IMG/VR virus record: IMGVR_UViG_3300047095_000752
Location: 62,001-126,000 of that record
Reading direction: 5' to 3' (one strand)
DNA: 64,000 bases
Part shown: in pieces, positions 4,524 through 63,846 of the stretch
How positions within the stretch are numbered: the stretch's first letter is position 1
How the letters are laid out: each line of letters opens with the position of its first letter
Position numbers and translations under genes: made by a program
The notes under the pieces: generated by a model
Told to the model about the DNA's origin: nothing
Database searches by the model: none
Seen by the model: the letters and a program-made list of their open reading frames with translations, nothing else

Positions 4524-4563
4524 GTGACTTACTCACTTTCTTTCTCCGGGTGGGTGGACTATT

Positions 4564-23506: not shown

Positions 23507-24664
23507 TTAATCAGTGAGTTTGCCTTTAAACCATTCCATGAACTCTTCTTGGTCGTATTTACCGGACTTCTGTCCATTCTCTTCTCTTGGTATTATTCTC
23601 AAGTTTTCTCTTAAATTGCAAATATTTTTTACTATTAGAGGACCATGAATATTATCTAGATCATTATCTATAAAAGCTTTACGGGGGAATATGTGATCTA
23701 CCGTGTAATCAGATCTATCCCATATATTACTTGATGCCTTGGCGACTTTTTGGGATTGGATGTGATTATTGTAGTTTGGATCGTCTTTTAATATATGTAG
23801 TTTACCATAATCAAACCCAAGATATGTCATTCTTAGAATACGGGTTCGATCTGGGTTAAATCTTGGATTGTTCTCACCTCTAACTTTATCATCTAAATAA
23901 CATTCCCGACACCGTTGTCCTATATTTTTAAAGTTATTAAATTTCATTTTAAATGTATGATTTCGGTCACATTTCATTATAAGGTATTTATGAGCATTTA
24001 TATATGTTTTACTTAATAAACTATAACCAAAACTTTCTATATGACTTTTAACGACTTCGTATTCGGGTCGAAATTTACCAAAACATTCTGGACATCGGTG
24101 ACCCACGTGAACAAACCCGACAAAACTCATTTCAAATATGTGATTATCCGGGCACTTGATTTTCATGTTTGTTTTATTGTTGATGTATTCTGTATCTAAC
24201 AGTAAATATCCTTCAACATTTATTTTAGACTTTACATAATTAAAATCATTTTTACGTTCCTGTGCAAATCGTATTGAGACGCACTTATTACATCGATTAT
24301 CCTGACTATAAAAACTGCTAAACCGTACCTTATATGTGTGGTCTGCGGGACATTTTATTGTTATTTTTGAGTTTACACCCTTATAATTTCCTATATCAAT
24401 TAATGTGTAACCATAGTCATTTAGTATTTTAGATATTTCATCAGATCCATGCTTGACCTCTTTCTTAATACATTTCTTACAACTAGTAGTCCGTCTAAAA
24501 TTATTATATGGTATCTCCGATATATTACCGCATGAGCATTTATATTTCATTTTGGTTTGTGTATTAATATATTCTTCTTTACTGACTAATAATACACAGT
24601 TTCGATCTAAATATGTTTGTAATACTTGTTCGTAGGGTACGGGTTTAGACATATGAATTTTCAT
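23507..24664 (-). CDS. HNH-family putative homing endonuclease with 4 zinc-ribbon repeats
   Basis: Repeats LLxxxYIN...KCxxxH.F...RCxxC; VDHIFP...NLRENLRII; likely start ATG 24664 (ORF track starts at 24778). Confidence 0.85.
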   Translation of the reverse strand: MKIHMSKPVPYEQVLQTYLDRNCVLLVSKEEYINTQTKMKYKCSCGNISEIPYNNFRRTTSCKKCIKKEVKHGSDEISKILNDYGYTLIDIGNYKGVNSKITIKCPADHTYKVRFSSFYSQDNRCNKCVSIRFAQERKNDFNYVKSKINVEGYLLLDTEYINNKTNMKIKCPDNHIFEMSFVGFVHVGHRCPECFGKFRPEYEVVKSHIESFGYSLLSKTYINAHKYLIMKCDRNHTFKMKFNNFKNIGQRCRECYLDDKVRGENNPRFNPDRTRILRMTYLGFDYGKLHILKDDPNYNNHIQSQKVAKASSNIWDRSDYTVDHIFPRKAFIDNDLDNIHGPLIVKNICNLRENLRIIPREENGQKSGKYDQEEFMEWFKGKLTD

Positions 24665-24723
24665 TCTAAAAATACCTACATGAACTTGTCGTGTAGGTAG
24701 TATATTTAATTTATTTATTTGAA

Positions 24724-26364
24724 CTAAGCTATGGTATAAGTGACACCATAATCTTTTAAACTTTCTTTTAATCCCCATTTATAAGCTAACACCATCAATA
24801 GGGGAAATTTGTAGGATCCCATGTACCCTATGAGGTATGCGCCGTTTTGGAGGAACTTACTGTGGATCTTCATGATCGAATACGATGATTCGAAGCGCCC
24901 TACGTTAATTGTGGGATAGAATATCGGATAACGTACGATCTGGTTGACTAGTATTTTCTGTTGTCCATTTATCACGAACGTTCCATTCGCAGTAAGATAC
25001 GGTAGGTCCACATGCACTTCGTGTATGTTACCCTCCGGATCTTTAAGTTGGATCTGGTAGCGCTCCTTGATCGATTGATATATCTCCGATGCTCCTGTAT
25101 GCACTTGTTTTACTTCCATACTCTTCAATTTCAGCGGAACATCTTTATCTTCGAGGAGTTTGAAGGCATCTGAGATATCATCTTTTAAATTAACTCTAAA
25201 ATCAGTCATACGTTTATTTAAAATATGTGCAGGGCTTTGATAATCTAAAAGCTTGGGTACATCGGCGGACTTAATGATCATATTCGTTGAAAAGTTTTTG
25301 GCAGGATCTCTTTTTAATAATTGAGTTACAAGTTTATTTATAATCTCAGCTTGCTTCTCAGGACTCTTCCGATCAATCTTCTTTGAAATTTCTTTAGCCT
25401 TCTCAAGATCACCCATAACGCTATAAACAACAGATCTTGTGATTAATTTATTATGATTTTCAAAATCTTTTTCGCGATCAATTGTAGAGTCAGCTTTTGT
25501 ATAGTTCTTAATAGCGTCCTGTACGATTTGTTCGTGCTGCTTACTTACGAGAGGAGATTCCTTAGTGGCTATTTGAGCTACTTCTTCAGCGTGATTTGAT
25601 TCCCCTGTGACTCCATCTGTATTTTGTTGTAGTCTTAATAGTATATTTTTAACTCGGACTAAACTATTATTTTTAGCTAAGACATCATACAGCTTTACGA
25701 AGCGCCCACCATCTTTATTATAAACGAACATTATAATTTTTTCGAATGGTATTGATTCTCTTTTACCAGCTTCTAACATTAATAACATATTAAAAAAGAT
25801 ATAACACTTCTTGTAGAATAGTTTATCGGATAAAGGCTTATCGACGTTCACGGCATATAACAAGATTGTTTCAAATTTATCTTTATCGATCTCACTAGCA
25901 GTTTCTAAATATTGATTATATAATTTAGATCCCTGACCTGTATCAAATCTTTTTGTACGATACATTAAGTCTACGGCGTTTAAATACCGTGTGGCATCGT
26001 AAAAGAAGTTGTATCCATTTACTTTAGTGTACTCACCGGGTCTACCTTTAATTGGTAGGAGGTCTCGATCTTTAATTAATTTTGTATATTCTGGGGTGAG
26101 ATATGATTGTGGTCTTGTTATGGTAGGTACAAAAACATATCGAGCATATTGCTTTTTGAAATTTAAAAAGTTATAGGTCTCTAATAAATTTACATTTTCA
26201 CCATAGAAATAAAAACATAAGTTCTTTTTACTATTTGGATCTTTTATTGGTATGACTAATTCATCATACGGTATAAAAAGCTTTTGGTTTAATAAATTCA
26301 TGTTGAGTACCTTATGTTCTTTAAATCCGGTATTGAAAATAATTGGGTTATTACGTAAACCCAA
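24724..26364 (-). CDS. rpoB: DNA-directed RNA polymerase beta subunit, N-terminal fragment with large N-terminal extension
   Basis: LPYLTANGTFVINGQQKILVNQIVRYP matches beta region IPLMTxxGTFxINGxERVxVSQLxRSP; likely start ATG 26301. Confidence 0.85.
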   Translation of the reverse strand: MGLRNNPIIFNTGFKEHKVLNMNLLNQKLFIPYDELVIPIKDPNSKKNLCFYFYGENVNLLETYNFLNFKKQYARYVFVPTITRPQSYLTPEYTKLIKDRDLLPIKGRPGEYTKVNGYNFFYDATRYLNAVDLMYRTKRFDTGQGSKLYNQYLETASEIDKDKFETILLYAVNVDKPLSDKLFYKKCYIFFNMLLMLEAGKRESIPFEKIIMFVYNKDGGRFVKLYDVLAKNNSLVRVKNILLRLQQNTDGVTGESNHAEEVAQIATKESPLVSKQHEQIVQDAIKNYTKADSTIDREKDFENHNKLITRSVVYSVMGDLEKAKEISKKIDRKSPEKQAEIINKLVTQLLKRDPAKNFSTNMIIKSADVPKLLDYQSPAHILNKRMTDFRVNLKDDISDAFKLLEDKDVPLKLKSMEVKQVHTGASEIYQSIKERYQIQLKDPEGNIHEVHVDLPYLTANGTFVINGQQKILVNQIVRYPIFYPTINVGRFESSYSIMKIHSKFLQNGAYLIGYMGSYKFPLLMVLAYKWGLKESLKDYGVTYTIA

Positions 26365-26399: not shown

Positions 26400-27827
26400 T
26401 TAAAATAGAATACCCTTTTGCATAGCATCCATAACCTGTGCCCGTTCGGACTGTAGTGAGCTTACACACTGGGGATCGCCTTGGCATTGTTGGAGTAGAC
26501 CATCTATATTGCTTAATTTCAGTTTATTCATATAATTGATACAAGCTTGTTGTTTACCGCCAGTTAAATTTGCACAACCTTGTTCAGTATACTTTTCCTG
26601 TTTACGAGCTTGATGTCTTTTCCATAGTATTGAAGCTGCAGTACCGGCGGCGGCGAGACCACCGGCAACAGCAGTCGCCGTTTGTGCTGTTGGGGACATT
26701 TGTTTATATCCATTTATAACGGCATTAGCACCATTTTTAGCCCGTTGCATTATACTTGGACCCTTGGGTTCTTCCGGTGTACCCCTAACCATATTAGCCA
26801 GATCATAATATGTATATCCGGCTACACCCATACCTGCAGTCGCTCTAAGTGGTTTACGCATTAAATTACGGCCAGCTCCAGTCAATGAGTTACCGACCCA
26901 TTTTGGGGCGACTCCAGATTTAGCAACGGCGGCTCCACCTTTTCTAAGCCCTAATCCAGCCATTTTAGGTAGGAATCTGGCAGCCGCACCAATAGCAGCC
27001 CCAATTTCATTAAATGTATATACGCCATCAACCCAAGGTGAATAATAAGATTCTTCAAAGTTCATAGCCTCAGACATCTCATCTTCATCAAACTCATTGG
27101 CTACAAAATTAACAGGGGTATCGACTGTAGCCTTGTCTAAAATAGATGGTTTAGAACTTGTTATAATACTTCTAATCTTATTAATATTAGTATTTACACC
27201 TTTTTGATATAATAGCTTGTATTCTTTAGTTCCATTCTTAGGTGAATACTCACAATATATAATCTTATCGAATGGGACTTCGGAGTCAATGTTCTTAATA
27301 TTTTTAATCATAGCTAAATATAATGGTAGAATCTTTTTAGTTAATAACTTTTCGGAAAATTCCAAATCTGTATTTAATGTATATAATAATACTTTTTCGG
27401 AGTTACTCGGTGAATTATTACATAATAATTTAAAATATGAACTCATCAATTCTCTAAACTTCTGATGATTGAATACAGTGATATTGTACCTGTCAATGAT
27501 AGCATCAAAATATCGATTAGCGTCTATATAGGTGTGAAATTTATCGAAGTCTTTTAGCTCGTTCAAGTTAGCTTTAATAGGTACAAAACCAGCATCTTTT
27601 ATACCGACCTTGTAATCTGAATTCATATAGGTTCGGAACGGGGCTGGAGATGTGGGTACAACATACTTACGTATACCGTTACCTGTAAATTTAGACCCTT
27701 TTATTGCAGAAAGAGTATCTTCGTTTTCACTTAACACCATTATTGACAGTAGCTTACCACCAACTGGGGATGTGGTTACACTTATGTCATTATATGAAAT
27801 GTAGGGTTTAATTGATGAATATATCAT
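26400..27827 (-). CDS. Putative internal virion protein (N-domain shared with RNAP beta-N; Ala/Gly-rich, Cys-rich C-terminus)
   Basis: Manual alignment to both neighbours; function inferred. Confidence 0.55.
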   Translation of the reverse strand: MIYSSIKPYISYNDISVTTSPVGGKLLSIMVLSENEDTLSAIKGSKFTGNGIRKYVVPTSPAPFRTYMNSDYKVGIKDAGFVPIKANLNELKDFDKFHTYIDANRYFDAIIDRYNITVFNHQKFRELMSSYFKLLCNNSPSNSEKVLLYTLNTDLEFSEKLLTKKILPLYLAMIKNIKNIDSEVPFDKIIYCEYSPKNGTKEYKLLYQKGVNTNINKIRSIITSSKPSILDKATVDTPVNFVANEFDEDEMSEAMNFEESYYSPWVDGVYTFNEIGAAIGAAARFLPKMAGLGLRKGGAAVAKSGVAPKWVGNSLTGAGRNLMRKPLRATAGMGVAGYTYYDLANMVRGTPEEPKGPSIMQRAKNGANAVINGYKQMSPTAQTATAVAGGLAAAGTAASILWKRHQARKQEKYTEQGCANLTGGKQQACINYMNKLKLSNIDGLLQQCQGDPQCVSSLQSERAQVMDAMQKGILF

Positions 27828-50692: not shown

Positions 50693-53600
50693 TTAATTCC
50701 TTTGTAGGTTCAGGTGCTTTGAAATCGTTAATCTAAATGCTGGGATATAAGACGGATTTAGATTACGAAGGTCGGCGATTTCCGTCTGGATTTTTATATA
50801 ATGCTCGTTGCCGTCATCCCCATATAAAGTGTATTTATAATAAAACGGGGAATTGAAAAATCTTTTCATATGAGTTGTTACTGGTAAATCTCTTAAGTAA
50901 ACCCTATAATATTGGGTTATTATCTTTGGTTTTATAACATATAATAGTTCATATACTTTAAACATGGAATCTGTAAATAATTTTATAATTTTAGAATACT
51001 TTTTAATATCGGAAGAAGTCATCATACAATTTTGGACTCGATGCTGTGAATTTTATCTCTGATGTTGTATATGCACGTGCGCCCCACGAGAAAAACTTAG
51101 AATGTACTACCCATATATTTGCTATTCCAATTACCTTCTGTAACATGGTTGACGAATATGTTATTGATCGATTTATAGATTGGCTTGTATTTAAGAAATA
51201 ATCATTCTTGATATAAACTCTATTGTATTGTATGAATATTCCTGCTTTCTTCCCTATCACGTGTATAATAGATTGCGCCCGACATAATAATTCATTGTAT
51301 ACCCGTAGTGGAAGTTTATGGAGCATCATTCTTCATCATCTCCATAATCATCGAATTCGTCGATTTCATCGTATTGTGCCGCAACCCCATTATAATATTT
51401 TGTTTTATTATATGAATCTTGATAGTCCATGAAAAATGCCTTAAATAACTGACTAAATTCATCCGTGTATCCATGTTCACCTCGTCCGCCGGTATAATTG
51501 AAAAACATTATAAACACAAATGAACTATACCCCAATCCAAATATATTTATCGTTTGAGACTTTTCCCGTAAAAAATCAAATATTTTATTCACATCATTGT
51601 ATAATACAGAGTGTACAGACGTATTTATATAAGATCCTAGACTACAGGTTCGACTTAATATGAACTGGAAAACATCCATCAGAAATCCTATACGCACACA
51701 AAGTTCGTACATAGGACTACACCTACCCTCGTCATTACAACACGCGACGATATACGTTTCATGCAATGAGGCGTGTGGATCTGGATAGTACTCGCTTTTT
51801 AGTAAATTCTTGATATAATCTCTAAAACAAAATCCATCGAGAGTTGTCTGGTGCCTTCCGTTGAGTTGCACTATCATTCGGGTACGCTCCAAGTCTTTCG
51901 GGTCAACGTAGTGTCCTTAGTGTAGATAATCTCGTAATGTAACTCCAAAGTGTTATACGACTGATCATCATATGAACCCTTCAACCGTAGTATATTCAAT
52001 TTATTATACGCTGCAAATAAATAATCGTGATCTCCATGCGGGGGTTCTTCCTTAACTTGGCATATCGTATAGGGGGTTGAATTTAAATCTATAGTTAGAC
52101 CCACATCTTTATTTTTTATAGGAGATTTGTTGTATGTTGGAGCCATATAATACATATAAGTCGGTAGGGCTATATATTTCAACTTAGGTGTACAGCGGTA
52201 TAATAAATAGAAAAGCCCCGTTATAAGTTTTTCTATTTTGAGTGCAAATTGTTTACACATCATTTGATAGCTTCGGATGCGAATGTAATTTGACTAAATT
52301 TTGTATGGACAGTTTTATCAAATTTGTTGGGAGAACCACTATATTTGAATATACTAAATAATGTAAGTTTGAAGTTAGATATATTCATAATTTGAGTGCC
52401 AGACCATGCTATATCACTCGATATAAAATTTGTATTAACAATCAACTTATAGTCATCCAAGCCCGAATCTAATGTAAAGTCATAATACGATCTATTATTA
52501 TGTAAGGAGGGCTGCAAAGTTCTATACATATACCCTGATATCGCTATTATGTCGACGTTAAGTTCTCGTAATAAACTCAAAATTTCACATATCGAATTCT
52601 CTAACTTTAGTATCATGCTTTACCTTTCGGTCTAGTTGTGTGTAACTGGGTATACGATAAAGATATATCACCACCGTCATCCTCGGCGGATACTAATTTA
52701 AATATAGTCAGTCTACATTTGTTTATATAAATATTTTCAAACCTTGATTTTTGACCATGATTAATTTTTGGTATGTATTCAAATCTAGTCATTATATATC
52801 GTATACTATCATTTATATTGAATGATACGTGGAATTCGTTATAATTGTCTGGTGTTGATGTGTATGATGGACTCATATAATACAAAAATGAATGAAAGCA
52901 TATACACTCCATCGGTCTTTTAATGCTTAACATTCTGAATATGGTCACTATACAATTCTCGATTAATTCTGGTATATGATTCATTTGTATTTAATAAGGA
53001 TAGGGTTGATCATACAGTCAAATGCTTTTTGGTCTAATACAAATAACTTGGGGGGTTCACTATCCGGTCCAACCTCGAATATCGGGCATTTTACGCATGA
53101 CATGTGATAAATAATATTTGATGTACCCTCGATTCTTTTGTAAAAGTCCACTTCATCATTTGTGTTGAATACGTAATCTATAAGGTCCCAATAGAGCGAC
53201 GGATCCCCAGTTCTATACAGGTAGTTTGGAATATGTATATATTTAGGTTTAAATTTTAATATTAAATTTAATATTTTACAAATCGAAACTTCAACGTAAT
53301 GAATAGGGTCAGTCGTTGCCATTGTTAAATCCTTTTTTAAGAGTTGGAATATCAACCGAATCAAAAATGTATATTGGGTATGGTGAATGTGAGAATTTAT
53401 TTAAATTGAATTTAAATAATGTATTTTTACCAGTACTCCTATATACTTCGTTGAGGTCATTGGGTTTCATGTTGTACATTTTTCTGGGTGGGTTATCAAC
53501 TCCGAATCCACTGGAGTCTATATAGTAGTTCGTAGTTCGCCTCCATATATAACAAGGTGTAAATAACACGAAGGGTCGTACACCAGAACTTCCTAATTTC

Positions 53601-55727
53601 GATTTAACTATTAATATAAGGGTAGATGATATTGCAGATTCTATCATGTCGATGAAATCCATAGTTAACATCTATAACCTCCTGTCGGTAAGATTTGATG
53701 TTATTCGGATATCAGCGTAACCCTTCTTTATATTTACATAATATAAATTGTTGGCATTTGATAGCCCATTAAAATAAATCAGTTTTAGATTATCTACTAT
53801 ATAGTTTTTTGGTCTAGGTGGGCTATAAATGAGTATGTCACCAACACCATCGATACGATATGGTTCAAACATTAAGGTATTGACTATAAAATGAACATGC
53901 CGATCATGTACACTTGATGCGGCTGGTGCATATGCTACTAAATTTAAGTACAAAAGTGAATTCCTAATATCATATAAATTAAAAATAGTTTTTATTATTG
54001 TCATTACCGCTGGTATGGATGCTGATATATAATTTCTGGTGCTACTCATGGCATTCTCTATAATCGTATATTTCGATTCCGCGCCCCATAAATGAAATTG
54101 AGAATAAAGTTGGCTTGTGAATAAATGCTACCGCTAAGTCGACCTTTGTGTCAAAGTCGAATCCTAACGTCATAGTGGTTGAGGCATACGGTTTATATCT
54201 GTATATATCGGGAGTTAAGCTAACTTCAACATACCCTAAAAAACTTTTACAACAATCATGGACGGCGTATCTATACATAGAATCGCAGTATATGTCAGTA
54301 ACCTTTCTACTCTGCACTAAATATGACATCAAATGACTACATAATGTTATAACGAATTTACGTTTAAATATTTTACATAATATACACAGAACACTACACA
54401 CACTATATTCTATTTTTCGAACTAACACGAGATTCAATTCAATATCCTTTCGTGGTTTTACTCTCTTGTTAAAATATATATAGTGAGTGTTTTAATATAC
54501 ACTGAGTGTTAGATGTAACCTGTCGGTCAAGGGTGAACCACTGTATTCATAGTCCAAATGTAATATATCCGACTTGTGAATATTAAATACATTTATTTCA
54601 TTATTGACGTTAGTTGTATATGTTTTGTATGACTTTATTTGGTCATATACTTTAAGTGAAATTAACGGCTCTCTGTATAATGTCATATAATTATCAAAAC
54701 CGTCCAGATCAGTTTGCGAAGAAAAGAATACTAAATTCTGAGACTTCATATCGATTGAACATATATCTTTTGGCTTACATATAATATGATAAAAAAGAAC
54801 AAAAGATTTGGATATTGAGTTTTCAATTTTAGCATATAAGTCCCGTATAAAATCTTCAGCCATACGCATATTGTTACCTCCCTTAAGTTCGATTACAAAA
54901 ATAAATATCATAAGGTATGATATCAATAATTAATATATATAATTAAAAATCACTTACCAAAATTAATGGTAAGTGATTTAATGTAGGACTTTTAACTTAT
55001 ATTAGAATGCTGTATATTCCTCGATGGGTATTATGTCGAAGTGAGCGCTACGAGGAAATGATAACCCTATTATATGCCTTTTGTGTATACATGTTTTGAA
55101 ATCGGGAGTTTGGCATGGGTAGTAATTAAAATCTTTCAGAAAAATTGTCAAACCTTCGAATAAAGGGGTGTCATCAGACCATCTAACTTTTTGTATATAT
55201 CTCGGATACAAAACCGAATAATGACCATCTAAAATTAATGGGTTGTATGTGAATATGTATATTATTTCACCAATTGGATCTAGGATACGACGTAATAATT
55301 TAAAAAGTATAGGTACACATTTTAAATACAGGTCGCTTATCAATTGCTTCAGTCTCCGGTTTGTTAACATCTAAAATGCGTTATAATCACAAAGTTTTAT
55401 CATTTCAAATGACGTGTCATCCACCCTTTTTATTCCTATTAAATTCTTCTTACGGACCAGCATTCTATAGTCTTCTCGACCCGTTTCGTAATCGTTAAAA
55501 TCTTGAGCCGAAAATGTCGTATAATAATTTGTATATAATTCTAGACCCCACAGTACCTTATCTTTATGTTTCGGGTATACAATTGAGGTATGGCAATATA
55601 TAGTAATAGGGTTTGTAACAAATATGTATGTGACTTTATTTATGGGTTGTATAATATTTCTAATTAAATGAAATAATAATTCTATTTTATGTGCTATTTG
55701 AGTGTATTTGTCAAAGTCTTCGTTCAT
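50693..55727 (-). CDS. Tandem array of ~12 short paralogous hypothetical ORFs (108-144 aa) plus one unrelated ORF (51326-51892)
   Basis: ORFs at 50693, 51003, 51874, 52260, 52613, 52981, 53309, 53672, 54042, 54492, 55002, 55371; KIExxIxxI(L/F)xxL...I..PxYxY pattern; coupled stops/starts. Confidence 0.65.
54924..54979 (-). promoter_or_regulatory. Terminator + AT-rich promoter-like motif
   Basis: AAATCACTTACCA/TGGTAAGTGATTT stem abutting CAATAATTAATATATATAAT. Confidence 0.65.
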
Positions 55728-55766
55728 TTGATTTCCTGAAGTTTAAGATTAAACCATTCTATGAAT

Positions 55767-57323
55767 TTATTTCTTCTTTTCTTTTAATTTTTCTATACTC
55801 AACTCACTGAGGGGTTCGCCGAATAATACTTTTTCGATCTGTGAATATTTCTTCGAGTCTTTTGAGATCAACCCAAATGTTAAACTTTTACCAAGGTTCT
55901 CATAGGCGACCCCCAGAGACCACGATATAATCGAAGGAAGAGATTTAATGCTATGTAATTCCGGATCGTATGGATCCTTCAATCTGGCTGCAATCATCGG
56001 ATCTTTCTTATTTCTTAAAATCGTTGCGAGGATGACCTCAAGGTGGCAACTATCCCAAGGTCCAAAAGTACTTAGAGCTTCGTAAAACTTCTTGTATAGG
56101 TTCTCTGGGGTCTCCCATGGACCCTTGCCCGCAACCAATGAGTCTAGGCTCTGGGCGATCTTTTCAGGAGCGATCTTAAAGAATTTAATTGTAAATAATT
56201 TAACATCTTTACCATACATTAAAGTGATACTATCAGCAGTTTCATTATAATCATCGTGGATATTAATTTCAACAGGCATTTCAATAGTAGCATTAACTTC
56301 AATATTACCAATATACATTCTAAAATAGCCTAAAGGTAACTTATAAGTATTTCCTACTTTTTCAATTGCATACTCGTCCTTGAAGATACTTTTATTGATC
56401 TTAATCGTTGTTACTTCAGCGCTGGAGTATAGATCGTTATCTTTTTGATATACCATACCTGATAAATATTTTTCTTCGTCATCTGTAATAGAGTCCGCAA
56501 GTTCTTTTAAGATATCCACCTTCTTGAAGACTACGGCCCCGCCTGTGTGAAATGAATTGTGTGTCTGAACATTATTATTCAAAAATTCTTCGGAGTCAGT
56601 TTTAAGATCATATACATATCCACAATATCCCTCTATACCGGGAACTACCTGCTCAATATCAATGTAATCATTAATATCCTGTATAAGCTTATCTGAAGGC
56701 ACAGCATTCTTTAAAGTCCAATATACAAGTCCGTCTTCAGTATTAATATCAAAGTTACAAGTATGACTTAAATGATCTGCTACAAGCTTCAACTGTGATA
56801 CAAAGTTAAAACTAAAAATCTTAGACTTGGTGTTGACTTTATCGTCGGACTTAATATTATCAAATAAGAAATGATATAAAAGGTATGTTAAGTTACTAGT
56901 ACTTATTTTAGATAAATAATCAGGATTAATACAAAAATTATATATCGAATCGCCATTAAAATATTCGGAATGATTTGCAATTATATGTAAATTAGGATCT
57001 TCAAATATATTCAACAAAATGTCAAATAGTATATCTACATCAGGCGGCTCTACCCCGTAAACAAATTCTAATTTACGTTCGGTGTTATCAACCCAAATTC
57101 TATCATGGAACATTACTATATCTTTAGCTTCAACCACCGTAGGTTGCCCGTCAAGCGACTGAATCCATACAGGGTGGTCTTCTTGGCAAAACAGCATATG
57201 TCCAGTCACAGTGCGAATAAAGCACATTGGTGCCGTTGGTGTATGCCTTTGGATCTTATATGCTCGGGTTAAACCGTCTTTACCCACGACATTGAGATCT
57301 AACTCTTTAGTTTCTAAATTCAT
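55767..57323 (-). CDS. rpoC: Split-intein C-part (256 aa) fused to RNA polymerase beta' C-terminal fragment
   Basis: CQEDHPVW (block B), VYDL (block F), QTHN|SFHTGG (block G + trigger loop), HLEVILATI, AYEN. Confidence 0.9.
   Translation of the reverse strand: MNLETKELDLNVVGKDGLTRAYKIQRHTPTAPMCFIRTVTGHMLFCQEDHPVWIQSLDGQPTVVEAKDIVMFHDRIWVDNTERKLEFVYGVEPPDVDILFDILLNIFEDPNLHIIANHSEYFNGDSIYNFCINPDYLSKISTSNLTYLLYHFLFDNIKSDDKVNTKSKIFSFNFVSQLKLVADHLSHTCNFDINTEDGLVYWTLKNAVPSDKLIQDINDYIDIEQVVPGIEGYCGYVYDLKTDSEEFLNNNVQTHNSFHTGGAVVFKKVDILKELADSITDDEEKYLSGMVYQKDNDLYSSAEVTTIKINKSIFKDEYAIEKVGNTYKLPLGYFRMYIGNIEVNATIEMPVEINIHDDYNETADSITLMYGKDVKLFTIKFFKIAPEKIAQSLDSLVAGKGPWETPENLYKKFYEALSTFGPWDSCHLEVILATILRNKKDPMIAARLKDPYDPELHSIKSLPSIISWSLGVAYENLGKSLTFGLISKDSKKYSQIEKVLFGEPLSELSIEKLKEKKK
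56556..57323 (-). mobile_element. IntC half of atypically split intein with degenerate endonuclease-like insert
   Basis: Residues 1-256; ends His-Asn followed by Ser+1. Confidence 0.88.
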
Positions 57324-57333
57324 TTACAGTTCC

Positions 57334-57603
57334 TTAAATAATAGGTGAAGATGCTAATTGCCAATATACGGGCGCGTAATATTCTTCCGGGACATGTGAT
57401 TTTTTGTAGTTCTTTTCGCCTTCCCAGCAACCCATATGTTTATATTGACTAAACTTTTTATTATATCTTAATAAACATATCTTAAATTCACGAGGTTCTT
57501 CGGAATAATATAATGCACGTGTTAAACAGTCGTTGTCAGGGAGTTTATCAACGGTTTTAATCCAGTTGCTTAAATTAATTTCGTCTTTACTTATTTTGTG
57601 CAT
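57334..57603 (-). CDS. DUF551-like small protein
   Basis: WIKTVDKLPD...PVYWQL. Confidence 0.65.
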   Translation of the reverse strand: MHKISKDEINLSNWIKTVDKLPDNDCLTRALYYSEEPREFKICLLRYNKKFSQYKHMGCWEGEKNYKKSHVPEEYYAPVYWQLASSPII

Positions 57604-57605
57604 TG

Positions 57606-59324
57606 TTAAGCAACTTTCTTCTTAAATACATTATTTCCACAATCCCAAACACGATCATATTCATTACTTTGCATATTTTGCCACTCGGTTAATGTTGGAT
57701 CAAATGATTCTAATAGATTGTTTAATTTATGTTTTTGAAATTTAAGTCTGGAATCTCGATTCATATAATCATTGGTATAAAAGTAATTTGGTGAGCCTGT
57801 ATGCGTTAATTCAAATCCAGAGCTTTCATATATATTACCATATCCATATCTTAGATCTGAATAGGTTATTATATCACACTTGATATCTTTTGAGAAGTCA
57901 TTTACTAACTTTTGGAAACCACCGACTACATTTGTATTTAATTTTGTGCAGAATCTTAATATTTCGTAATTGTCTTTGGATCTAATTACTGTAATCATGC
58001 TAATTAAATTATTATTACTATCATAAAGTCCATAATTGAATCCACGATGAGTGTAACCTTGTATATGATTTTGGTCTAAAAATAACTCTGCGTCCTTGAA
58101 GGGAACCTTATGTATATTTAGATCCGATGTATTATATGTATTTTCATATATTTTTAATTTATTTGCAATAATCGAACAAACTATATCTTGCTTATTAAAC
58201 CATTCATCATCGAATATATGAATTAAATCAATTCCTTTTTCTTTACATAAATTCGTTTTATTGATATGGTAATGTTCATCTTTGCCTTGTTTTTCGGAGT
58301 GCCAATAGAGTCCGTTGAATTCAATTGCAAGTTTGTAGTCTGGAATGTAAATGTCGATTTCAAGTGGATTTATTAATGACCGGTCATTTTCTATTATAAT
58401 TGTATTTTCTGGTAGGATCGATTTAACGAATTCGTAAACTTCGTGCTCGCCTTTGGAAGTGCCTGACATACCCTGATGTGGGTAACAATTAAAACATCTT
58501 GGTATGTGTCCATCCGCTAAATTATCTAAAAAGATATGATTACAAGTATTACATTTGAATTCATATCGGTTATCTCGTGATATTCCATTATATTCATCTA
58601 GGCTAAATACTGGCGTTACTTTACTTAATAATCTTTTTGAATTCAACAATTTTATATAAAATACTTCTTTTAATTTAACTTTACCAGCGGCAGACGATAT
58701 ATAGTGTTTATGACCATATCGTTTAACCATTGTGTTTTCGGCTTTGTTTCTTATCTCTTTTATTTTAGATACGTTATCCACACCGTATTTTTCTTGTACT
58801 GTATTTTTAATCTTTTCACGAATTTCATTAGATTCGAATGGAGTTAGTGCTCCATATTTTTCTAAATTAGTTTTATTTCGTTTTTCGTTTATTTCTTTAT
58901 TGTCAAACAGATTTACACTACCATATCGCTCAATTCGTGTATTAAGTATTTTATTCTTAACTTTTTCATTTTTTGCCGATTGTTCATACCCATACTTTTT
59001 TAGATTTGTGTTTTTTATTTTTTGTTTTACATCTTCATTTTGAAACCCATATTCAGATCCATATCTCTCCAGATTTGTTTGTTTAATTTTGTTTTTAGTT
59101 TCTGTATTTAATCCCCTGCATTTATTAGAGCATGTTTTATAAAATCCATCTTTAAAACTTTTATATGGGGTTGGGCTTTTACAAACTTTACACAAATGTT
59201 CGTCATTAACTGAAATATATTTAATATAATATTCTGATATATGTATTTCTTTGTGTGAATGCATTATATGATTTTTTAAAGAATTTGTATCATCAAACAC
59301 TCTCTGGCAGATCTGACATTGCAT
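57606..59324 (-). CDS. Free-standing putative homing endonuclease (Zn finger, TNLERYG repeats, Vsr-like/Hef-like nuclease)
   Basis: CQIC..H..H; TNL(E/K)(R/K)YG repeats; EIDIYIPDYKLAIEFNGLYWH; LIHIFDDEW; NHIQG, RFC, YSDLRYG. Confidence 0.85.
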   Translation of the reverse strand: MQCQICQRVFDDTNSLKNHIMHSHKEIHISEYYIKYISVNDEHLCKVCKSPTPYKSFKDGFYKTCSNKCRGLNTETKNKIKQTNLERYGSEYGFQNEDVKQKIKNTNLKKYGYEQSAKNEKVKNKILNTRIERYGSVNLFDNKEINEKRNKTNLEKYGALTPFESNEIREKIKNTVQEKYGVDNVSKIKEIRNKAENTMVKRYGHKHYISSAAGKVKLKEVFYIKLLNSKRLLSKVTPVFSLDEYNGISRDNRYEFKCNTCNHIFLDNLADGHIPRCFNCYPHQGMSGTSKGEHEVYEFVKSILPENTIIIENDRSLINPLEIDIYIPDYKLAIEFNGLYWHSEKQGKDEHYHINKTNLCKEKGIDLIHIFDDEWFNKQDIVCSIIANKLKIYENTYNTSDLNIHKVPFKDAELFLDQNHIQGYTHRGFNYGLYDSNNNLISMITVIRSKDNYEILRFCTKLNTNVVGGFQKLVNDFSKDIKCDIITYSDLRYGYGNIYESSGFELTHTGSPNYFYTNDYMNRDSRLKFQKHKLNNLLESFDPTLTEWQNMQSNEYDRVWDCGNNVFKKKVA

Positions 59325-59343
59325 TTAATATTTTCTTTCGTAA

Positions 59344-60834
59344 TTAGTTTTGGTCCCAAAGTTCATCTAATGAGATTATACCATGCTTTTCCGTATTTAC
59401 CAACCCCGTTGAACACTTCATAATCTTTTCTGATAACGAACAACAGGCTTGGGCAGCAAGCATACCCAGTGCCCGTGACTTTACCTGATAAATCAAATCG
59501 CCATAACAAGTGCGGCATATTTCACGACTTTTGCAAAATGTAGGGCTACGGAGTTCTACGAACTTTCCGATATGTGCATCAGTCAGTCTTTCTACCTTCC
59601 GATCCTTCTGATTTATAATATAACGACCTTGCATCCGACCAAATAATTCGGATGTTATCTTAAGTTTTAGTCCTCGTTTAGTTCCACAATCCGCATTTGT
59701 GATGTCACCCTCACACGATCCAATCGAATACACCATTTTACGATATGCATATCCACCGAACGCGGTATTTACGGCACGGTCAATAATACCCTTACGACTA
59801 CCTGCGGCGGATTCTAGGTATTGCTCAGGATCGAAACCATCAACCAACGCTTTTTCGACAGGCGGAAGGAGTTCGCCACTGGCGTTACTGATCAATCCTT
59901 TGGATACCATAATCTGACGCAATTGCGATCCACCCTTGGCCGCCCCACTTGCTATCTGGATATAAAGTCCTTCTTCTTGTGTCCTCAAATATTCCATCAA
60001 GGCAACATCCATCTCATCTAAAATTTTAATTTGTTTATTTACATCCGGCTCAGCCTTAAGTTTCTTTGAAAGGCTTTTTAATTCGGGTGAAGGTATAAAC
60101 ATATCTAAACTAATAGTCTGGGGATATTGAGTAGCAGCCTCGAAGGACATCTTGCACATCTTATCAATTGTAAGTGCGAAATCAGCTTTGTTTTTAAGCA
60201 TCACTTCTTTTAATACTTTACTCACATCTCTCGCATTCATAGGTTTATCTATAAATGGAATGTAAGATGGGAGAACACTATTGAATATAACTCTACCTGC
60301 GGTTGTGTTTGTAAGCCCGATATTCGTGTTGATCCGGACGGGATCCCCCGGATGTAGTTTTTCAGCATCTTGTACATTGTTTATAACTCTTATAGGTTTT
60401 TTATTTTCCAAGTAAGTAATTGTAAAAATACCGATATTCATTTCTTTTGATAGTGAAAAGTTAGGAGAATTTAAGAATTCAAAGCCCTGTGTTGTAATCA
60501 TTTTATTCTTAACTTCATTCTGAGCTTCAATTGAAATTGGGACGACAATAGCCATTTGGTCACCATCGAAATCCGCCATGTAAGGACCCACAACAACCGG
60601 GTGAATATCAATAGTCGGTCCATCGATTATAGTAACGTAAGCACCTTGGATCCGTCCTCTTTCGACGTTAGGATCACGTTTATATAATACTACTCGATTT
60701 TTATCTTCGATTTCTTTTACTGCGATTTTTCGAATAGTATCATAAATTATAGGATTTACTTTATATCCCTTAGAGATGTATTTCAATATCTTACGGATAT
60801 CGTCGATGGAGACTTTTTCACTTTCATGTAACAT
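59344..60834 (-). CDS. rpoC: RNA polymerase beta' middle (catalytic) fragment fused to split-intein N-part
   Basis: YMADFDGDQM, SGAAKG, GSRKGIIDRAVNTAFGGYAYRKM (bridge helix), DCGT/RSPTFC/CRTCYG, GMLAAQ. Confidence 0.95.
   Translation of the reverse strand: MLHESEKVSIDDIRKILKYISKGYKVNPIIYDTIRKIAVKEIEDKNRVVLYKRDPNVERGRIQGAYVTIIDGPTIDIHPVVVGPYMADFDGDQMAIVVPISIEAQNEVKNKMITTQGFEFLNSPNFSLSKEMNIGIFTITYLENKKPIRVINNVQDAEKLHPGDPVRINTNIGLTNTTAGRVIFNSVLPSYIPFIDKPMNARDVSKVLKEVMLKNKADFALTIDKMCKMSFEAATQYPQTISLDMFIPSPELKSLSKKLKAEPDVNKQIKILDEMDVALMEYLRTQEEGLYIQIASGAAKGGSQLRQIMVSKGLISNASGELLPPVEKALVDGFDPEQYLESAAGSRKGIIDRAVNTAFGGYAYRKMVYSIGSCEGDITNADCGTKRGLKLKITSELFGRMQGRYIINQKDRKVERLTDAHIGKFVELRSPTFCKSREICRTCYGDLIYQVKSRALGMLAAQACCSLSEKIMKCSTGLVNTEKHGIISLDELWDQN
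59347..59415 (-). mobile_element. IntN half (23 aa) of atypically split intein
   Basis: CSTGLVNTEKHGIISLDELWDQN-stop, intein block A pattern beginning with Cys1. Confidence 0.85.
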
Positions 60835-60855
60835 TCAGGATTCCTTTAATACGTA

Positions 60856-61218
60856 TTAATCCAATTGCTTATATCGTTTATCTAATTCGTTAATTAAAGC
60901 GTGGATACTATCGTCCATTTTATATTTATTTGCTGTCGCCCAAGATCCAGCATAAGCATTATCATCTTCTTTTATTTCCGGTGTTATTTCAAGAACGGAT
61001 ACGAGAGCCTCATACAGTTTGTGTGTATCTATTGATTTGTATGTACTGTCTCTATCTCTTGATTTATCAAGTTCACTTCTTAATTGTAGTAATTCTTGTA
61101 TATACTCAGCATTCTGTTTTTTTAATGTACTGATAATGGATATTGAATCTATATTTGATCCTTCATACTTATCCATATCGTTTATATTGAGACCAAAAGA
61201 TCCATTTTCAGATTCCAT
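60856..61218 (-). CDS. Hypothetical protein
   Basis: 120 aa, between beta' fragments. Confidence 0.65.
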   Translation of the reverse strand: MESENGSFGLNINDMDKYEGSNIDSISIISTLKKQNAEYIQELLQLRSELDKSRDRDSTYKSIDTHKLYEALVSVLEITPEIKEDDNAYAGSWATANKYKMDDSIHALINELDKRYKQLD

Positions 61219-61233
61219 TTAAATACCCTTTTG

Positions 61234-61560
61234 TTAAATGCCTCTGCTGTACTCTTCTTGTGCATCTGCTAAGACAGGTACAACATACCGAGTATAACCT
61301 CTTCGTCCATCACTTACAAATTTTGGGGCAGCGATAAAGTGGGCGGCTTGCTTATCATTCTTCATCTTAAATGGAAATTTACCATCCCATCCTTCGACTT
61401 TGTCTAAGTTCGTCTCGCCAACTTCAACTTTAGTACCATCTGATAATTTAATATCATTCGGGATACCATTACCTTCAAAATCATCATTAGCCTTATACTT
61501 GAGGATTTCTTTCTTGGTCATACTATCAATTTGTTCGAATATAATCTTTTTCAATACCAT
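61234..61560 (-). CDS. Hypothetical protein (possible head protein)
   Basis: 108 aa, AAGGA RBS, N-terminal IIFEQ. Confidence 0.65.
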   Translation of the reverse strand: MVLKKIIFEQIDSMTKKEILKYKANDDFEGNGIPNDIKLSDGTKVEVGETNLDKVEGWDGKFPFKMKNDKQAAHFIAAPKFVSDGRRGYTRYVVPVLADAQEEYSRGI

Positions 61561-61578
61561 TGTTATTTCCTTTGTGGG

Positions 61579-62499
61579 TTAATCGTCTTCTAATAAATCG
61601 GATTCTTGAGATAAGAATTTCTTAACTTCTATGTGAAATTCATCGGGAATCATGCTTTTGTATGGTGAATTAATAATGCCATATATAAGATATGGTTCAA
61701 AAAGCTGACACGCTAGTCGTAATGGTACACCAACATTACCAACTTTTAATTTATAATTCGGTGTAATGACCGCACGAGCAGAATAGTCCACCCGCTTACC
61801 CAGAAGATGGTTTCGTATCAGACCTTCCTTCTTGGATACTTTTACTTTTACAAGCTCATATAGATCTCGCATAAATAATTGCATTCTATAACTGAAAATA
61901 TCAAACAACTGACCGGATACACTACCTAACTGAGTTCCTGCCATAATTATTTTTTGATATAACTTTGTGAGATCATCGATCTGGATATCCCCAGTAATTT
62001 CGTCAATCTGAATTGGTCTATATTCGGGTGAAATTACAGGTAATTTATTTATAAAGAAAGTTCGATCATCAACTGCTTTGTAAAGTACATCGATAATCTT
62101 ATTTCGGTCTCCACCCTCTTCACCGGTCGAAAAACGTATCTTATGGATGTTGTTTACAAATGCAGTCATACCATTAATATCACCCATATCATCTTCGACT
62201 AAATTATTATTCGAATCCAGTGAAAATATGGCTTCCCCAGATAATAAGTCGGGGATGCGTCTAAAGATACGCTTCTCTAAAATATCATATAGAAATGGGT
62301 GAACAACATTACAGTTTAGATCAATCCAAGAATAATTAGAACGTCTCTCTTTAGATCCTTCTACCCCGAAGATAGTTTCTGAATATAAACCTTGAGGGTG
62401 GAAATTCATAGACTTATCGAAGTAGATTTGATGTGATGTTATAGCTTCTAGTGCCTTCTTTTCTTTTAAAAAGACATCTACGTGAATTGGTTCGATCAT
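61579..62499 (-). CDS. rpoC: RNA polymerase beta' N-terminal fragment
   Basis: GLYSETIFG, LPVISPEYRP, DDLTKLYQKII, GLIRNHLLGKRVDYSARAVI, LFEPY. Confidence 0.93.
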   Translation of the reverse strand: MIEPIHVDVFLKEKKALEAITSHQIYFDKSMNFHPQGLYSETIFGVEGSKERRSNYSWIDLNCNVVHPFLYDILEKRIFRRIPDLLSGEAIFSLDSNNNLVEDDMGDINGMTAFVNNIHKIRFSTGEEGGDRNKIIDVLYKAVDDRTFFINKLPVISPEYRPIQIDEITGDIQIDDLTKLYQKIIMAGTQLGSVSGQLFDIFSYRMQLFMRDLYELVKVKVSKKEGLIRNHLLGKRVDYSARAVITPNYKLKVGNVGVPLRLACQLFEPYLIYGIINSPYKSMIPDEFHIEVKKFLSQESDLLEDD

Positions 62500-62510
62500 A
62501 AAAATACCTC

Positions 62511-62574
62511 TAAAAATTTGTCCAATTAATTAAATTTTATAAAAAAACATGGTGGAAATACATATTCCACCATG
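62511..62574 (-). promoter_or_regulatory. Terminator (62541-62574) followed by putative late promoter (62511-62523)
   Basis: CATGGTGGAA/TTCCACCATG stem; GGACAAATTTTTA. Confidence 0.6.
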
Positions 62575-62592
62575 CTTCTAATTTCTATTATA

Positions 62593-62955
62593 TCACAGAT
62601 CCTTATAGGATCCCTTAATAAAATGTTCGATTATGTTGTCTTTCATCTTGTCAAGGACTGGAAATGAGGATCGGTTCTTCTCAATCACAGTTTCCAATAT
62701 CCCCAATATGACTTTATAGTCTATCTTATCTTTATCATCTTTAACATATTTATTATGGAATTCAACAAATTTTCTGATATCTTTTAAATTGTATTTTTTA
62801 AGAATTTTGAAATGTCGTATGGATATGGGGTTGTGTTCTATATAAACGTCCTCATATACCGCGTATAATTCCTTCATATTTTTTATTGTTTTATATTTGA
62901 CTTTGAATAGAATTAAGTCGATAAACACTTTGAGTTTATTATATTTTTCATCCAT
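62593..62955 (-). CDS. Hypothetical protein
   Basis: 120-aa ORF ending before a terminator. Confidence 0.6.
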   Translation of the reverse strand: MDEKYNKLKVFIDLILFKVKYKTIKNMKELYAVYEDVYIEHNPISIRHFKILKKYNLKDIRKFVEFHNKYVKDDKDKIDYKVILGILETVIEKNRSSFPVLDKMKDNIIEHFIKGSYKDL

Positions 62956-62961
62956 AATATA

Positions 62962-63846
62962 TCAGTCCGATTCGATCTTGGATTCAGGGGTGTGTCCAAT
63001 CTTGAAGAGCGAATCCATGTTGCCGCTCAGGGCGTCCAGATCAACTTTCGCGTTCTGGACATTGTCATGGATATAGTCGCCCCACGGGATTTTGCGTTTG
63101 TCGATGGACTTGAAGAAATCGATTTCGTATTCGCACCATTTCTGGTACATCGGGAAATCCGCCGCGTTGGCTTCTTCGTTCATCTGACCTTGGAAGTCCG
63201 CCATGTACAGTTCCCAAATCCGAAGGAGTTCCGTGTCCTTCAGCTTGACTATGAACAGGTCGGCTTCCTTGTCTGAGTTCATGGCGACAGCGTACAGGGA
63301 GAACAGAGTGTTCATCTGCGTGAAGGCGTACAGGAGAAGCTTGCACTGGTCCTTGGTGTACGGGAAGTGGGTCAGGTCGCCGTAACAGTCGTAGTTGGAG
63401 TCCTTGTGATCCTTCATGACATCGAAGACTTCATTCTTGAGGTTATCATAGTTCGGAAGCTTGGACAGGATCTTCCGGAAGGTGCCATCCGGATCGTCTT
63501 CAACGTCCTTGAGGAGTTCATCCATGTTGATATCGTTGACAAGGGTGTCGTGGATGTGCTGGACGAGGTTGTGATACAGACGCTGTTCAATGGTGAGTTG
63601 CTCACCACCATCTTCGGAGCATATGTTGGACATCATGGCTGTGGTGTAAAAGCGATTGATGTCAGCTTGACTGTTGAAGAATGCGATGGTGTTGACATTT
63701 CGGGCAACACGGTCGGGGGAGCCGAGTTCACCGTCGTAAAAGTCGATTCCCTTGATGTTGTGGAAGAAAACCATCCACGTCTCGGGGAGTTCAAGCGCGT
63801 CAATCCGCGCACGCATCTTCTTTGTGAGCTTTGCCATTGTTTTCAA
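62962..63846 (-). CDS. Hypothetical acidic protein (GC-rich, strong codon bias)
   Basis: 294 aa, C/G-ending codons, AAGGA RBS. Confidence 0.75.
   Translation of the reverse strand: MKTMAKLTKKMRARIDALELPETWMVFFHNIKGIDFYDGELGSPDRVARNVNTIAFFNSQADINRFYTTAMMSNICSEDGGEQLTIEQRLYHNLVQHIHDTLVNDINMDELLKDVEDDPDGTFRKILSKLPNYDNLKNEVFDVMKDHKDSNYDCYGDLTHFPYTKDQCKLLLYAFTQMNTLFSLYAVAMNSDKEADLFIVKLKDTELLRIWELYMADFQGQMNEEANAADFPMYQKWCEYEIDFFKSIDKRKIPWGDYIHDNVQNAKVDLDALSGNMDSLFKIGHTPESKIESD

Follow-up and report, generated by a model that had tools for sequence, protein, structure and literature searches.

Fractured genes, described mostly from phage metagenomes, are interrupted by a split intein, with a free-standing homing endonuclease gene of the GIY-YIG or Vsr-like type between the two halves (PMC2677866). 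The set published in 2009 comprised eight kinds of enzymes acting in the synthesis and repair of DNA, with one exception showing another break point, and the term 'RNA polymerase' is absent from that paper (PMC2677866). In this work, an arrangement of this kind was characterized in the gene for the beta' subunit of a multisubunit RNA polymerase (RNAP). The gene is located in a stretch of 64,000 nucleotides (nt), hereafter the window, which is part of the uncultured phage record IMG/VR UViG_3300047095_000752 (245,225 bp). Two open reading frames (ORFs) carry, besides their beta' parts (the exteins), the N-terminal and the C-terminal half of an intein (IntN and IntC), and protein trans-splicing of this class 1 split intein very probably joins the beta' fragments within the trigger loop.

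AceL-TerL, GOS-TerL and VidaL are atypically split inteins with a very short IntN and a compact IntC of about 100-130 amino acids (aa). They are named in PMC11766414, PMC13014065 and PMC10189870. An earlier reading of the same DNA, made without database searches (hereafter the sequence-only reading), had placed the element close to this class and had stated that no such case was known in a multisubunit RNAP. The latter statement applies to the split form, which is apparently new: no report of a split intein in RNAP was found in a literature search that covered few subscription journals, and inteins go unmentioned in a paper on RNAP-encoding Caudovirales. It does not extend to inteins in general, since uncut inteins are known in multisubunit RNAP subunits, namely in archaeal COG0086 proteins, in eukaryotic and giant-virus subunits, and in chloroplast RpoB (PMC4760082, PMC5784728).

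Structure of the fractured beta' gene

The fractured gene and its parts, in the direction of transcription, are the following:

59344..60834, minus strand: ORF A, 496 aa, ending ...GMLAAQACCSLSEKIMK / CSTGLVNTEKHGIISLDELWDQN-stop
59416..60834, minus strand: N-extein, middle part of beta' (ORF A residues 1-473), with the MADFDGD motif, up to ...AAQACCSLSEKIMK
59347..59415, minus strand: IntN, 23 aa, intein block A with Cys1, CSTGLVNTEKHGIISLDELWDQN; stop codon at 59344-59346
57331..57335, minus strand: AAGGA ribosome-binding site of ORF C, read from the sequence
55767..57323, minus strand: ORF C, 518 aa, starting 2,020 nt downstream
56556..57323, minus strand: IntC (ORF C residues 1-256), with blocks N2/B/N4, an endonuclease-like remnant and blocks F/G
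55767..56555, minus strand: C-extein, C-terminal part of beta', 262 aa, beginning with Ser+1-Phe-His-Thr-Gly-Gly

The intein halves are located on two ORFs of the same strand, one with its own stop and the other with its own start. Cys1 is residue 474 of ORF A (codon 59413-59415). IntC ends in ...GYVYDLKTDSEEFLNNNVQTHN (also ...VYDLKTDSEEFLNNNVQTHN) with His255-Asn256, and residue 257 opens the sequence SFHTGGAV. The sequence-only reading had described the same anatomy, with a beta' ORF that runs into a block A peptide and a stop, and a separate downstream ORF, preceded by AAGGA, whose intein part reads ...THN/SFHTGG; both descriptions were confirmed.

Four ORFs are tightly packed in this region (ORF A, an endonuclease gene, an ORF of 89 aa and ORF C), with gaps of 19, 2 and 10 nt, and only 31 nt of the insert between the halves are non-coding. 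The AAGGA sequence lies 7 nt ahead of the ATG of ORF C, in an overlap with the stop codon that ends the 89-aa ORF. From this packing we infer the co-transcription of the cassette genes; a scan for promoters and terminators over 55500-62700 was uninformative, with counts equal to or below the shuffled expectation.

ORF A showed matches to Pfam RNA_pol_Rpb1_2 (1.5e-15) and Rpb1_5 (1e-8) and contains the catalytic MADFDGD metal-binding motif. Against the PDB, phmmer aligned it with bacterial beta' (7e-34) as far as ...AAQ[S/A], directly before the trigger loop. The N-extein end AAQACCSLSEKIMK corresponds to the N-terminal arm of the trigger loop, while the C-extein supplies its catalytic tip and C-terminal arm and is colinear with the last 250 aa or so of relatives that lack the intein and are about 720 aa long. 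The DFDGD motif and the Rpb1 domains 2 and 5 are those of a multisubunit RNAP beta' subunit, and so is the trigger-loop motif, which is complete only when the exteins are joined.

The joined exteins give a beta' segment of 735 aa that reads ...SLSEKIMK-SFHTGGAV..., and about 18 intein-less cluster representatives (about 700-737 aa) carry the unbroken sequence ...SLSEKIMK[S/T/G/L/A]FH[T/L]GGAV.... Removal of the in-frame insert restores the motif conserved in the intein-less homologues (EKIMK-SFHTGG), so the restored trigger loop of the sequence-only reading is upheld both by these alleles and by the PDB alignment up to ...AAQ. Representative P0072, with ...GIMRTFHTGG, is a bridge to the bacterial consensus; because it ties the motif to that consensus, K473/S257 is equated with R933/T934 of E. 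coli beta'. By this alignment, the intein site is placed between the equivalents of R933 and T934, three residues ahead of the catalytic His. We take the E. coli numbering (R933/T934, catalytic H936) to be that of the established literature. The +1 position is free in the intein-less alleles (S/T/G/L/A), and Ser+1 is therefore retained by the intein and not by the polymerase. With its recurrence in independent clusters and with intein-less relatives reading through the junction, the two-piece layout is far beyond chance.

Identity of the intein halves

Homologues were searched with ORF A and ORF C among 5.8 billion proteins, and IntC homologues by a full HMMER scan of 1.84 billion representatives; the assemblies of the relatives were obtained from ENA, Logan, JGI and IMG/VR. 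Among cultured phages (tblastn, 50,697 records), ORF A gave matches of no more than 30% identity and ORF C gave no match.

ORF C was not recognized by sequence models: its Pfam and PHROG scans gave nothing at threshold and its phmmer search against the PDB only spurious matches to SUMO and BolA (E > 0.004), for which reason sequence models alone miss the intein. The AlphaFold2 model of IntC, built from a 25-sequence alignment, had a mean predicted local distance difference test score (pLDDT) of 88.1 and a predicted template modelling score of 0.87. In a Foldseek search against the PDB with this model, the top 40 matches were all inteins, the best being TliVMA (E 2e-8, probability 1.00), and GyrA, RadA, PI-SceI and PI-PfuI were also matched. 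IntC is accordingly predicted to have the Hint fold characteristic of inteins.

Among the 25 IntC sequences, C46, Q47, H50, P51, D239, T242 and N256 are invariant and H255 nearly so; His50 of block B lies within an invariant CQxxHP and Asp239 belongs to block F, and Ser+1 is nearly invariant among the IntC relatives. The IntN tails have Cys at position 1 in 22 of 23 sequences and Ser in the remaining one. The residue set of class 1 splicing is complete in the window (Cys474 as Cys1, Ser257 as +1, His255-Asn256, His50 and Asp239), and Cys1, His50, Asp239, His255, Asn256 and Ser+1 are invariant or nearly so across 26-88% identity.

These residues bear on a different explanation, in which the halves are splicing-dead and serve as a non-covalent docking module for the beta' fragments, the trigger loop remaining interrupted. 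All residues of the chemistry are conserved over a range of 28-97% identity, and Ser+1 is kept in the intein alleles even though the intein-less alleles vary at this position, which makes docking quite improbable. By the established mechanism of RNAP, the trigger loop must fold into helices at each nucleotide addition, and a Hint complex of about 280 aa, three residues from the catalytic His, would be hard to square with activity. On the other hand, the beta' subunit described here already tolerates one cut without an intein (61579/60834), the Thr of block B is replaced by Gln, and a precedent exists in phage NrdA, which was fragmented by a mobile element and is assembled via element-derived interaction domains (PMC3045599).

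The ratio of non-synonymous to synonymous substitution rates (dN/dS) was calculated against L001, a 97%-identical relative. It was 0.022 for the N-extein and 0.024 for the C-extein; for the intein halves it was 0.080 (IntC) and 0.08 (IntN), with dS of 0.5-0.8. The exteins are under very strong purifying selection and the intein halves are also under purifying selection. With the predicted Hint fold and the conserved catalytic residues, this agrees with the claim of the sequence-only reading that the two pieces are halves of an intein. The same values are difficult to reconcile with a beta' copy that is decaying or no longer functional, be it as a pseudogene or through faulty assembly. In favour of such a copy, the contig is metagenomic and from an uncultured phage, and in relative L004 the intein is broken by overlapping frames within the endonuclease domain, possibly by a frameshift. 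However, an extein dN/dS of 0.02, the independent assembly of the same layout from many samples (ENA, Logan, JGI, IMG/VR) and the absence within the window of any other detectable copy of the beta' middle or C-terminal part leave this explanation hardly credible.

Split point and uncut alleles

The contiguous alleles that the sequence-only reading had suggested looking for in related phages exist: the same intein is found uncut at the same site in P0154 (1485 aa), P0167 (1015 aa) and the IMG/VR relatives L007, L008 and L009. P0154 and P0167 are among the 44 IntC relatives retrieved by the HMMER scan. IntN and IntC of the window align end to end with the uncut inteins. When split and uncut forms are aligned together, the tails that make up IntN in the window, L001, L002, L003 and L006 correspond to residues 1-25 of the uncut inteins, and the IntC ORFs begin at a conserved LETK...GKDG. 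The break lies in a variable linker of 8-12 residues after block A, as had been proposed from the sequence, and not the canonical endonuclease-insertion site.

A model of the uncut L007 intein was used solely for the placement of secondary structure in the IntN-equivalent segment and for a LAGLIDADG match. The segment was predicted as strand-strand-helix (residues 5-8, 11-14 and 15-22), followed by a low-confidence linker (23-29), and the model matched the endonuclease-bearing inteins PI-SceI and TliVMA and the LAGLIDADG enzyme I-DmoI. By alignment with L007 and L009, a further feature is delimited within IntC:

56679..57086, minus strand: vestigial LAGLIDADG-like middle domain of IntC, approximately residues 80-215

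This domain, composed of helices and strands, retains by homology only the second half of the LAGLIDADG domain present in the uncut relatives; the first half is deleted. In the 25 sequences no Asp or Glu of the domain is invariant or nearly so except D183, and no conserved acidic catalytic residue was found; because of this and of the deleted half, the domain is probably inactive. IntC is not a mini-intein but part of an intein whose own LAGLIDADG-type domain has decayed, and the retention of this nested domain indicates that the intein was of full size before it was split.

Distribution and phylogeny of the three allelic states

In the metagenomic phage beta' clade to which the window belongs, the site may be empty, occupied by the split intein, or occupied by an uncut or longer form. 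The sequence-only reading had described one case of the arrangement, which is not a singleton: it is a widespread family, and the two-piece layout recurs in independent protein clusters from other metagenomes, 23 for the N piece and 44 for the C piece. The 23 split representatives end 21-31 residues past EKIMK, with the tail pattern C-x-x-G-x-[ILV]...[SFM]-[LM]-[DE]-[DE]-[LIV]-W, and a few representatives run further into the intein (uncut or longer). Besides the window, the split layout was seen at L001, L002, L003, L006, L011, L012 and L013. An endonuclease gene lies between the halves in the window, L001 and L006, and is absent from five of the eight split loci inspected, which have the following ORF A identity to the window and the following content between the halves:

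L002: 70%; three small ORFs without endonuclease signatures, one of them a paralogue of the IntC middle
L011: 65%; three small ORFs
L012: 51%; eight small ORFs
L003: 47%; twelve genes spanning 6.7 kb, a DNA ligase included
L013: 43%; 327 nt without any ORF

As these five relatives show, the split is kept without an endonuclease. They also bear on repair at the RNA level, by which the insert of about 2 kb would self-splice as an intron or be bypassed, the resulting mRNA encoding an uncut, cis-splicing intein. RNAP genes of AR9 and of Staphylococcus jumbo phages carry group I/II introns with endonuclease genes, and the AR9 study reportedly found the RNAP genes interrupted by introns; in AR9, ORF A is most similar to the C-terminal gene of the virion RNAP beta', which adjoins a Hef-like endonuclease gene. 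Nevertheless, the IntN stop falls in the same linker in 23 clusters, although anything between 327 nt and 6.7 kb of DNA, with as many as 12 unrelated genes, may separate the halves, and in the window ORF C has its own ATG and AAGGA and the insert has just 31 nt of non-coding DNA. A covariance-model scan (cmscan against Rfam, permissive filters) of 55000-63000 at E ≤ 1 found no group I or group II intron family, only four weak and irrelevant matches. The joining of the two ORFs by RNA splicing, which the sequence-only reading had named among the outcomes that would speak against its claim, is very unlikely, given the persistence of the split without an endonuclease (the halves being 12 genes apart in L003), the negative Rfam result and the lack of non-coding room.

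In the extein tree (53 sequences), split, uncut and empty states are interspersed, with well-supported sister pairs that differ in state (P0041/P0049, P0038/P0043 and L007/P0052); the window falls in a 14-member clade in which all sequences are split. A single clade with purely vertical inheritance was considered and rejected, the starred branches of the extein tree forcing at least four changes for the split state. Such patchiness is typical of a mobile or repeatedly lost element. The uncut inteins that have a full LAGLIDADG domain group together in the intein tree. Its best topology requires three changes, and the split may have arisen once or more than once.

Other intein-related features were observed in the relatives, whose beta' genes have up to three intein sites (DFDGD motif, IMK/SFH and SFH/TGG). 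A second, uncut intein lies three residues downstream of the site studied here (SFH/C...HN/TGG) in L001 (8986-11070; P0002), P0011, P0013, P0014, P0017, P0023, P0147 and L009, and some of these have a LAGLIDADG_3 domain. The window is without this intein and the 97%-identical L001 has it, so that its presence or absence immediately behind the catalytic His is a natural polymorphism. The third site, at the catalytic DFDGD motif, is occupied in L013 (7118-10368), L007 (6998-11842), P0026, P0045, P0154 and P0167. At this DFDGD site, L007, P0045 and P0154 have an uncut intein. That of L013 is broken at the canonical position and has a DUF7487 endonuclease gene between its halves, and its C-terminal residue is apparently Asp (..VQD/TM) and not Asn. 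With this additional split, the L013 beta' would need two trans-splicing events. The ORF between the halves of L002 that is paralogous to the IntC middle (3820-4710, plus strand, 296 aa; 32% identity, E 2e-18) has no block F/G splicing end and is a free-standing intein-derived gene. In L004 (7001-10346, plus strand) the same intein is broken inside the LAGLIDADG domain into ORFs of 696 aa and 427 aa that overlap. The break may result from a frameshift (the contig name hints at assembly from long reads) or represent a second kind of split, of the canonical type.

Genes between the halves

The two genes located between ORF A and ORF C are the following:

57606..59324, minus strand: free-standing homing endonuclease gene, 572 aa, with a C2H2 zinc finger at the N terminus of its product, followed by DUF7487 repeats and by a putative Vsr-like (EDxHD-type) core
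57334..57603, minus strand: ORF of 89 aa, between the endonuclease gene and IntC

The free-standing endonuclease had been predicted by the sequence-only reading, which omitted the 89-aa ORF. The 572-aa product matched PHROG 3339 'homing endonuclease' (1.6e-121) and Pfam DUF7487 (2.7e-25), and REase_MTES_1575 below the cut-off (1.2e-3). Its match to PDB 3r3p (I-Bth0305I) was weak, extending over 78 residues (phmmer E 0.022). The Vsr-like EDxHD family, of which I-Bth0305I is the prototype (PMC3239194), was first predicted in fractured genes (PMC2677866), and in the I-Bth0305I crystal construct the catalytic-domain positions D196A and H213A are mutated (PMC3239194); these positions align with the D of ...EIDIY... 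and the H of ...YWHS... in the 572-aa ORF. The endonuclease gene is under purifying selection, with a dN/dS of 0.185. L001 has a counterpart of 665 aa in the corresponding position, and so does the distant L006, with one of 689 aa; between L006 and the window the endonuclease is 47% identical while IntC is only 28% identical. Members of the DUF7487 endonuclease family are also present in another fracture, that of the DFDGD motif in L013. The 572-aa endonuclease probably mobilises the cassette or entered it secondarily.

The 89-aa ORF had no Pfam or PHROG family match; it has a counterpart of 87 aa in L001, with a dN/dS of 0.22. No paralogues of the endonuclease, IntC or the small ORFs were found within the window.

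Second cut of beta' and neighbouring genes

The N-terminal part of beta' is encoded by a separate gene, and this second cut carries no intein:

61579..62499, minus strand: beta' N-terminal piece, 306 aa, separate gene, matching Pfam Rpb1_2 positions 1-49 (4.4e-9) and, weakly, Rpb1_1
61234..61560 (108 aa) and 60856..61218 (120 aa), minus strand: small ORFs in the intein-less cut, spanning 60856..61560

The cut (60835-62499 region) falls inside Pfam Rpb1 domain 2, between profile positions of approximately 49 and 90. This layout, with a separate beta' N-terminal gene, is kept in L001, L006, L011, L012 and L013. The two small ORFs gave no credible Pfam or PHROG match; L001 and L006 have small ORFs in syntenic position. 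Upstream of the N piece, an intergenic hairpin with a perfect 10-bp stem (62548-62574) overlaps weak, sub-threshold Rfam matches that are most likely due to chance. Directly downstream of the C piece, ten ORFs of about 120 aa are arranged in tandem (51874-55727, minus strand); they are weakly paralogous (best pair E 6e-20) and without family match, and L001 has a similar array.

The window contains a replication and transcription module (SbcC-like protein, helicase, topoisomerase II, RNAP beta). The RNAP beta-like ORF (15830-18313, minus strand, 827 aa) has Rpb2 domains 3 and 6 and is located 37 kb from beta'. In L006, L007 and L013 a beta gene of about 1350 aa directly follows beta', and the smaller size in the window suggests that its beta is also in pieces. 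An ORF of 423 aa (23507-24778, minus strand), with a CapR homology domain (1e-14) and matches to PHROG endonuclease families 681/559, may be another mobile endonuclease; its neighbours are large ORFs of unassigned function (24724..26364 and 26400..27827).

Proposed mechanism and its evaluation

Trans-splicing would start from two precursors, one being the beta' middle part with the 23-aa IntN and the other the 256-aa IntC with the beta' C-terminal part. IntN would bring the first two strands and the short helix of the Hint fold and dock onto IntC. A thioester would then form between Cys1 and Lys473; attack by Ser+1 would give a branched ester, followed by cyclisation of Asn256 and an O-to-N shift to a normal peptide bond. 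The expected end products would be the 735-aa beta' segment with an intact trigger loop and a released IntN/IntC complex. The polymerase would have an intact trigger loop only after ligation, and the active site probably forms only once the two proteins have been stitched together.

The observed basis of this proposal comprises the anatomy of the sequence, its homologues, the fold predicted for it, the conserved residues, the signs of purifying selection and the natural uncut and empty alleles, and on this basis the joining of the beta' fragments by protein trans-splicing is highly probable. Several points weigh against it. The Thr of block B is replaced by Gln in the whole family. IntC reached only 14.4 bits (E 0.034) with Pfam PF14890 (Intein_splicing), below the gathering cut-off of 35.8; the uncut relatives L007 and L009 are also below the cut-off, at about 20.5 bits (E 4e-4), and the matches of other relatives are faint or weak. 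The model of the uncut L007 intein is of moderate quality (pLDDT 63.9), and the dN/dS of IntN rests on 7 substitutions. The efficiency with which an IntN of 23 aa and an IntC of 256 aa carrying an extra domain would splice is uncertain. The support as a whole consists of sequence and predicted structure, from which splicing itself, its chemistry and an active spliced subunit are inferred.

A stronger version of trans-splicing, in which it is an obligatory and selected maturation step that leaves the polymerase dead until the precursors meet and thereby sets the time or place of transcription, is rather unlikely. The same doubt applies to its two corollaries, that this role would be why dozens of lineages have kept the split, also where the endonuclease has been lost, and that some relatives, such as L013, would need two ligations per beta' subunit. 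Nothing was found in support of the post-translational switch suggested by the sequence-only reading.

If protein trans-splicing does occur, this would apparently be, within the literature searched, the first multisubunit RNAP with a trigger loop assembled post-translationally from two polypeptides. For intein biology, a large natural family becomes available, with at least 44 clusters in which the intein is split after block A, and uncut, split and empty alleles can be compared. A full-size LAGLIDADG intein that is split non-canonically, with a second endonuclease in the gap, is a misfit with the model in which an endonuclease invades a mini-intein. For protein engineering, the natural IntN peptides, at 21-31 aa, are within reach of chemical synthesis, and the family may offer many diverged, possibly orthogonal pairs, Ser1 variants included, the large IntC being a drawback.

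Comparison with known systems

The locus shares with the fractured genes of PMC2677866 two ORFs on the same strand, each with an extein part and an intein half, a free-standing endonuclease between them, here probably of the Vsr lineage, and its occurrence in a phage. It differs from them in the host protein, a multisubunit RNAP beta' subunit; in the break, which lies after block A and not at the endonuclease-insertion site; and in the endonuclease, which with its 572 aa far exceeds theirs in size and contains DUF7487 repeats and a zinc finger. In contrast to the 'missing link' model of endonuclease acquisition proposed in the same paper, the intein of the window retains a decayed nested LAGLIDADG-like domain.

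The likeness to AceL-TerL, GOS-TerL and VidaL, on which the sequence-only reading had relied, holds for the short IntN and not for IntC. As in these inteins, IntN consists of block A only, with 23 aa in the window and 21-31 aa among 23 relatives (the class being delimited at about 40 aa at most); all other blocks are in IntC, and the first nucleophile is Cys1 (Ser1 in a few relatives). IntC is, however, of 256 aa with an extra domain, the LAGLIDADG-like remnant, compared with about 100 aa in AceL-TerL, and both the extein and the insertion site are different. No specific homology to VidaL was detected in the IntC fold search, in which 6vgv ranked 40 (E 0.11).

With the uncut RNAP inteins (PMC4760082, PMC5784728) the element shares its insertion at highly conserved catalytic regions of the large subunits; those inteins are contiguous, cis-splicing and of cellular, organellar or giant-virus origin, whereas the present one is split and resides in a phage beta' gene. 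AR9/PBS1, phiKZ-like and Staphylococcus jumbo phages also have beta and beta' in pieces that are targets of homing endonucleases, but theirs are joined by introns or are separate subunits, while here the pieces carry complementary intein halves. The locus is set apart from the fractured genes and the atypically split inteins by its host protein, a multisubunit RNAP beta' subunit, by the trigger-loop site, by the large IntC with its decayed nested remnant and by the coexistence of a free-standing endonuclease with that remnant.

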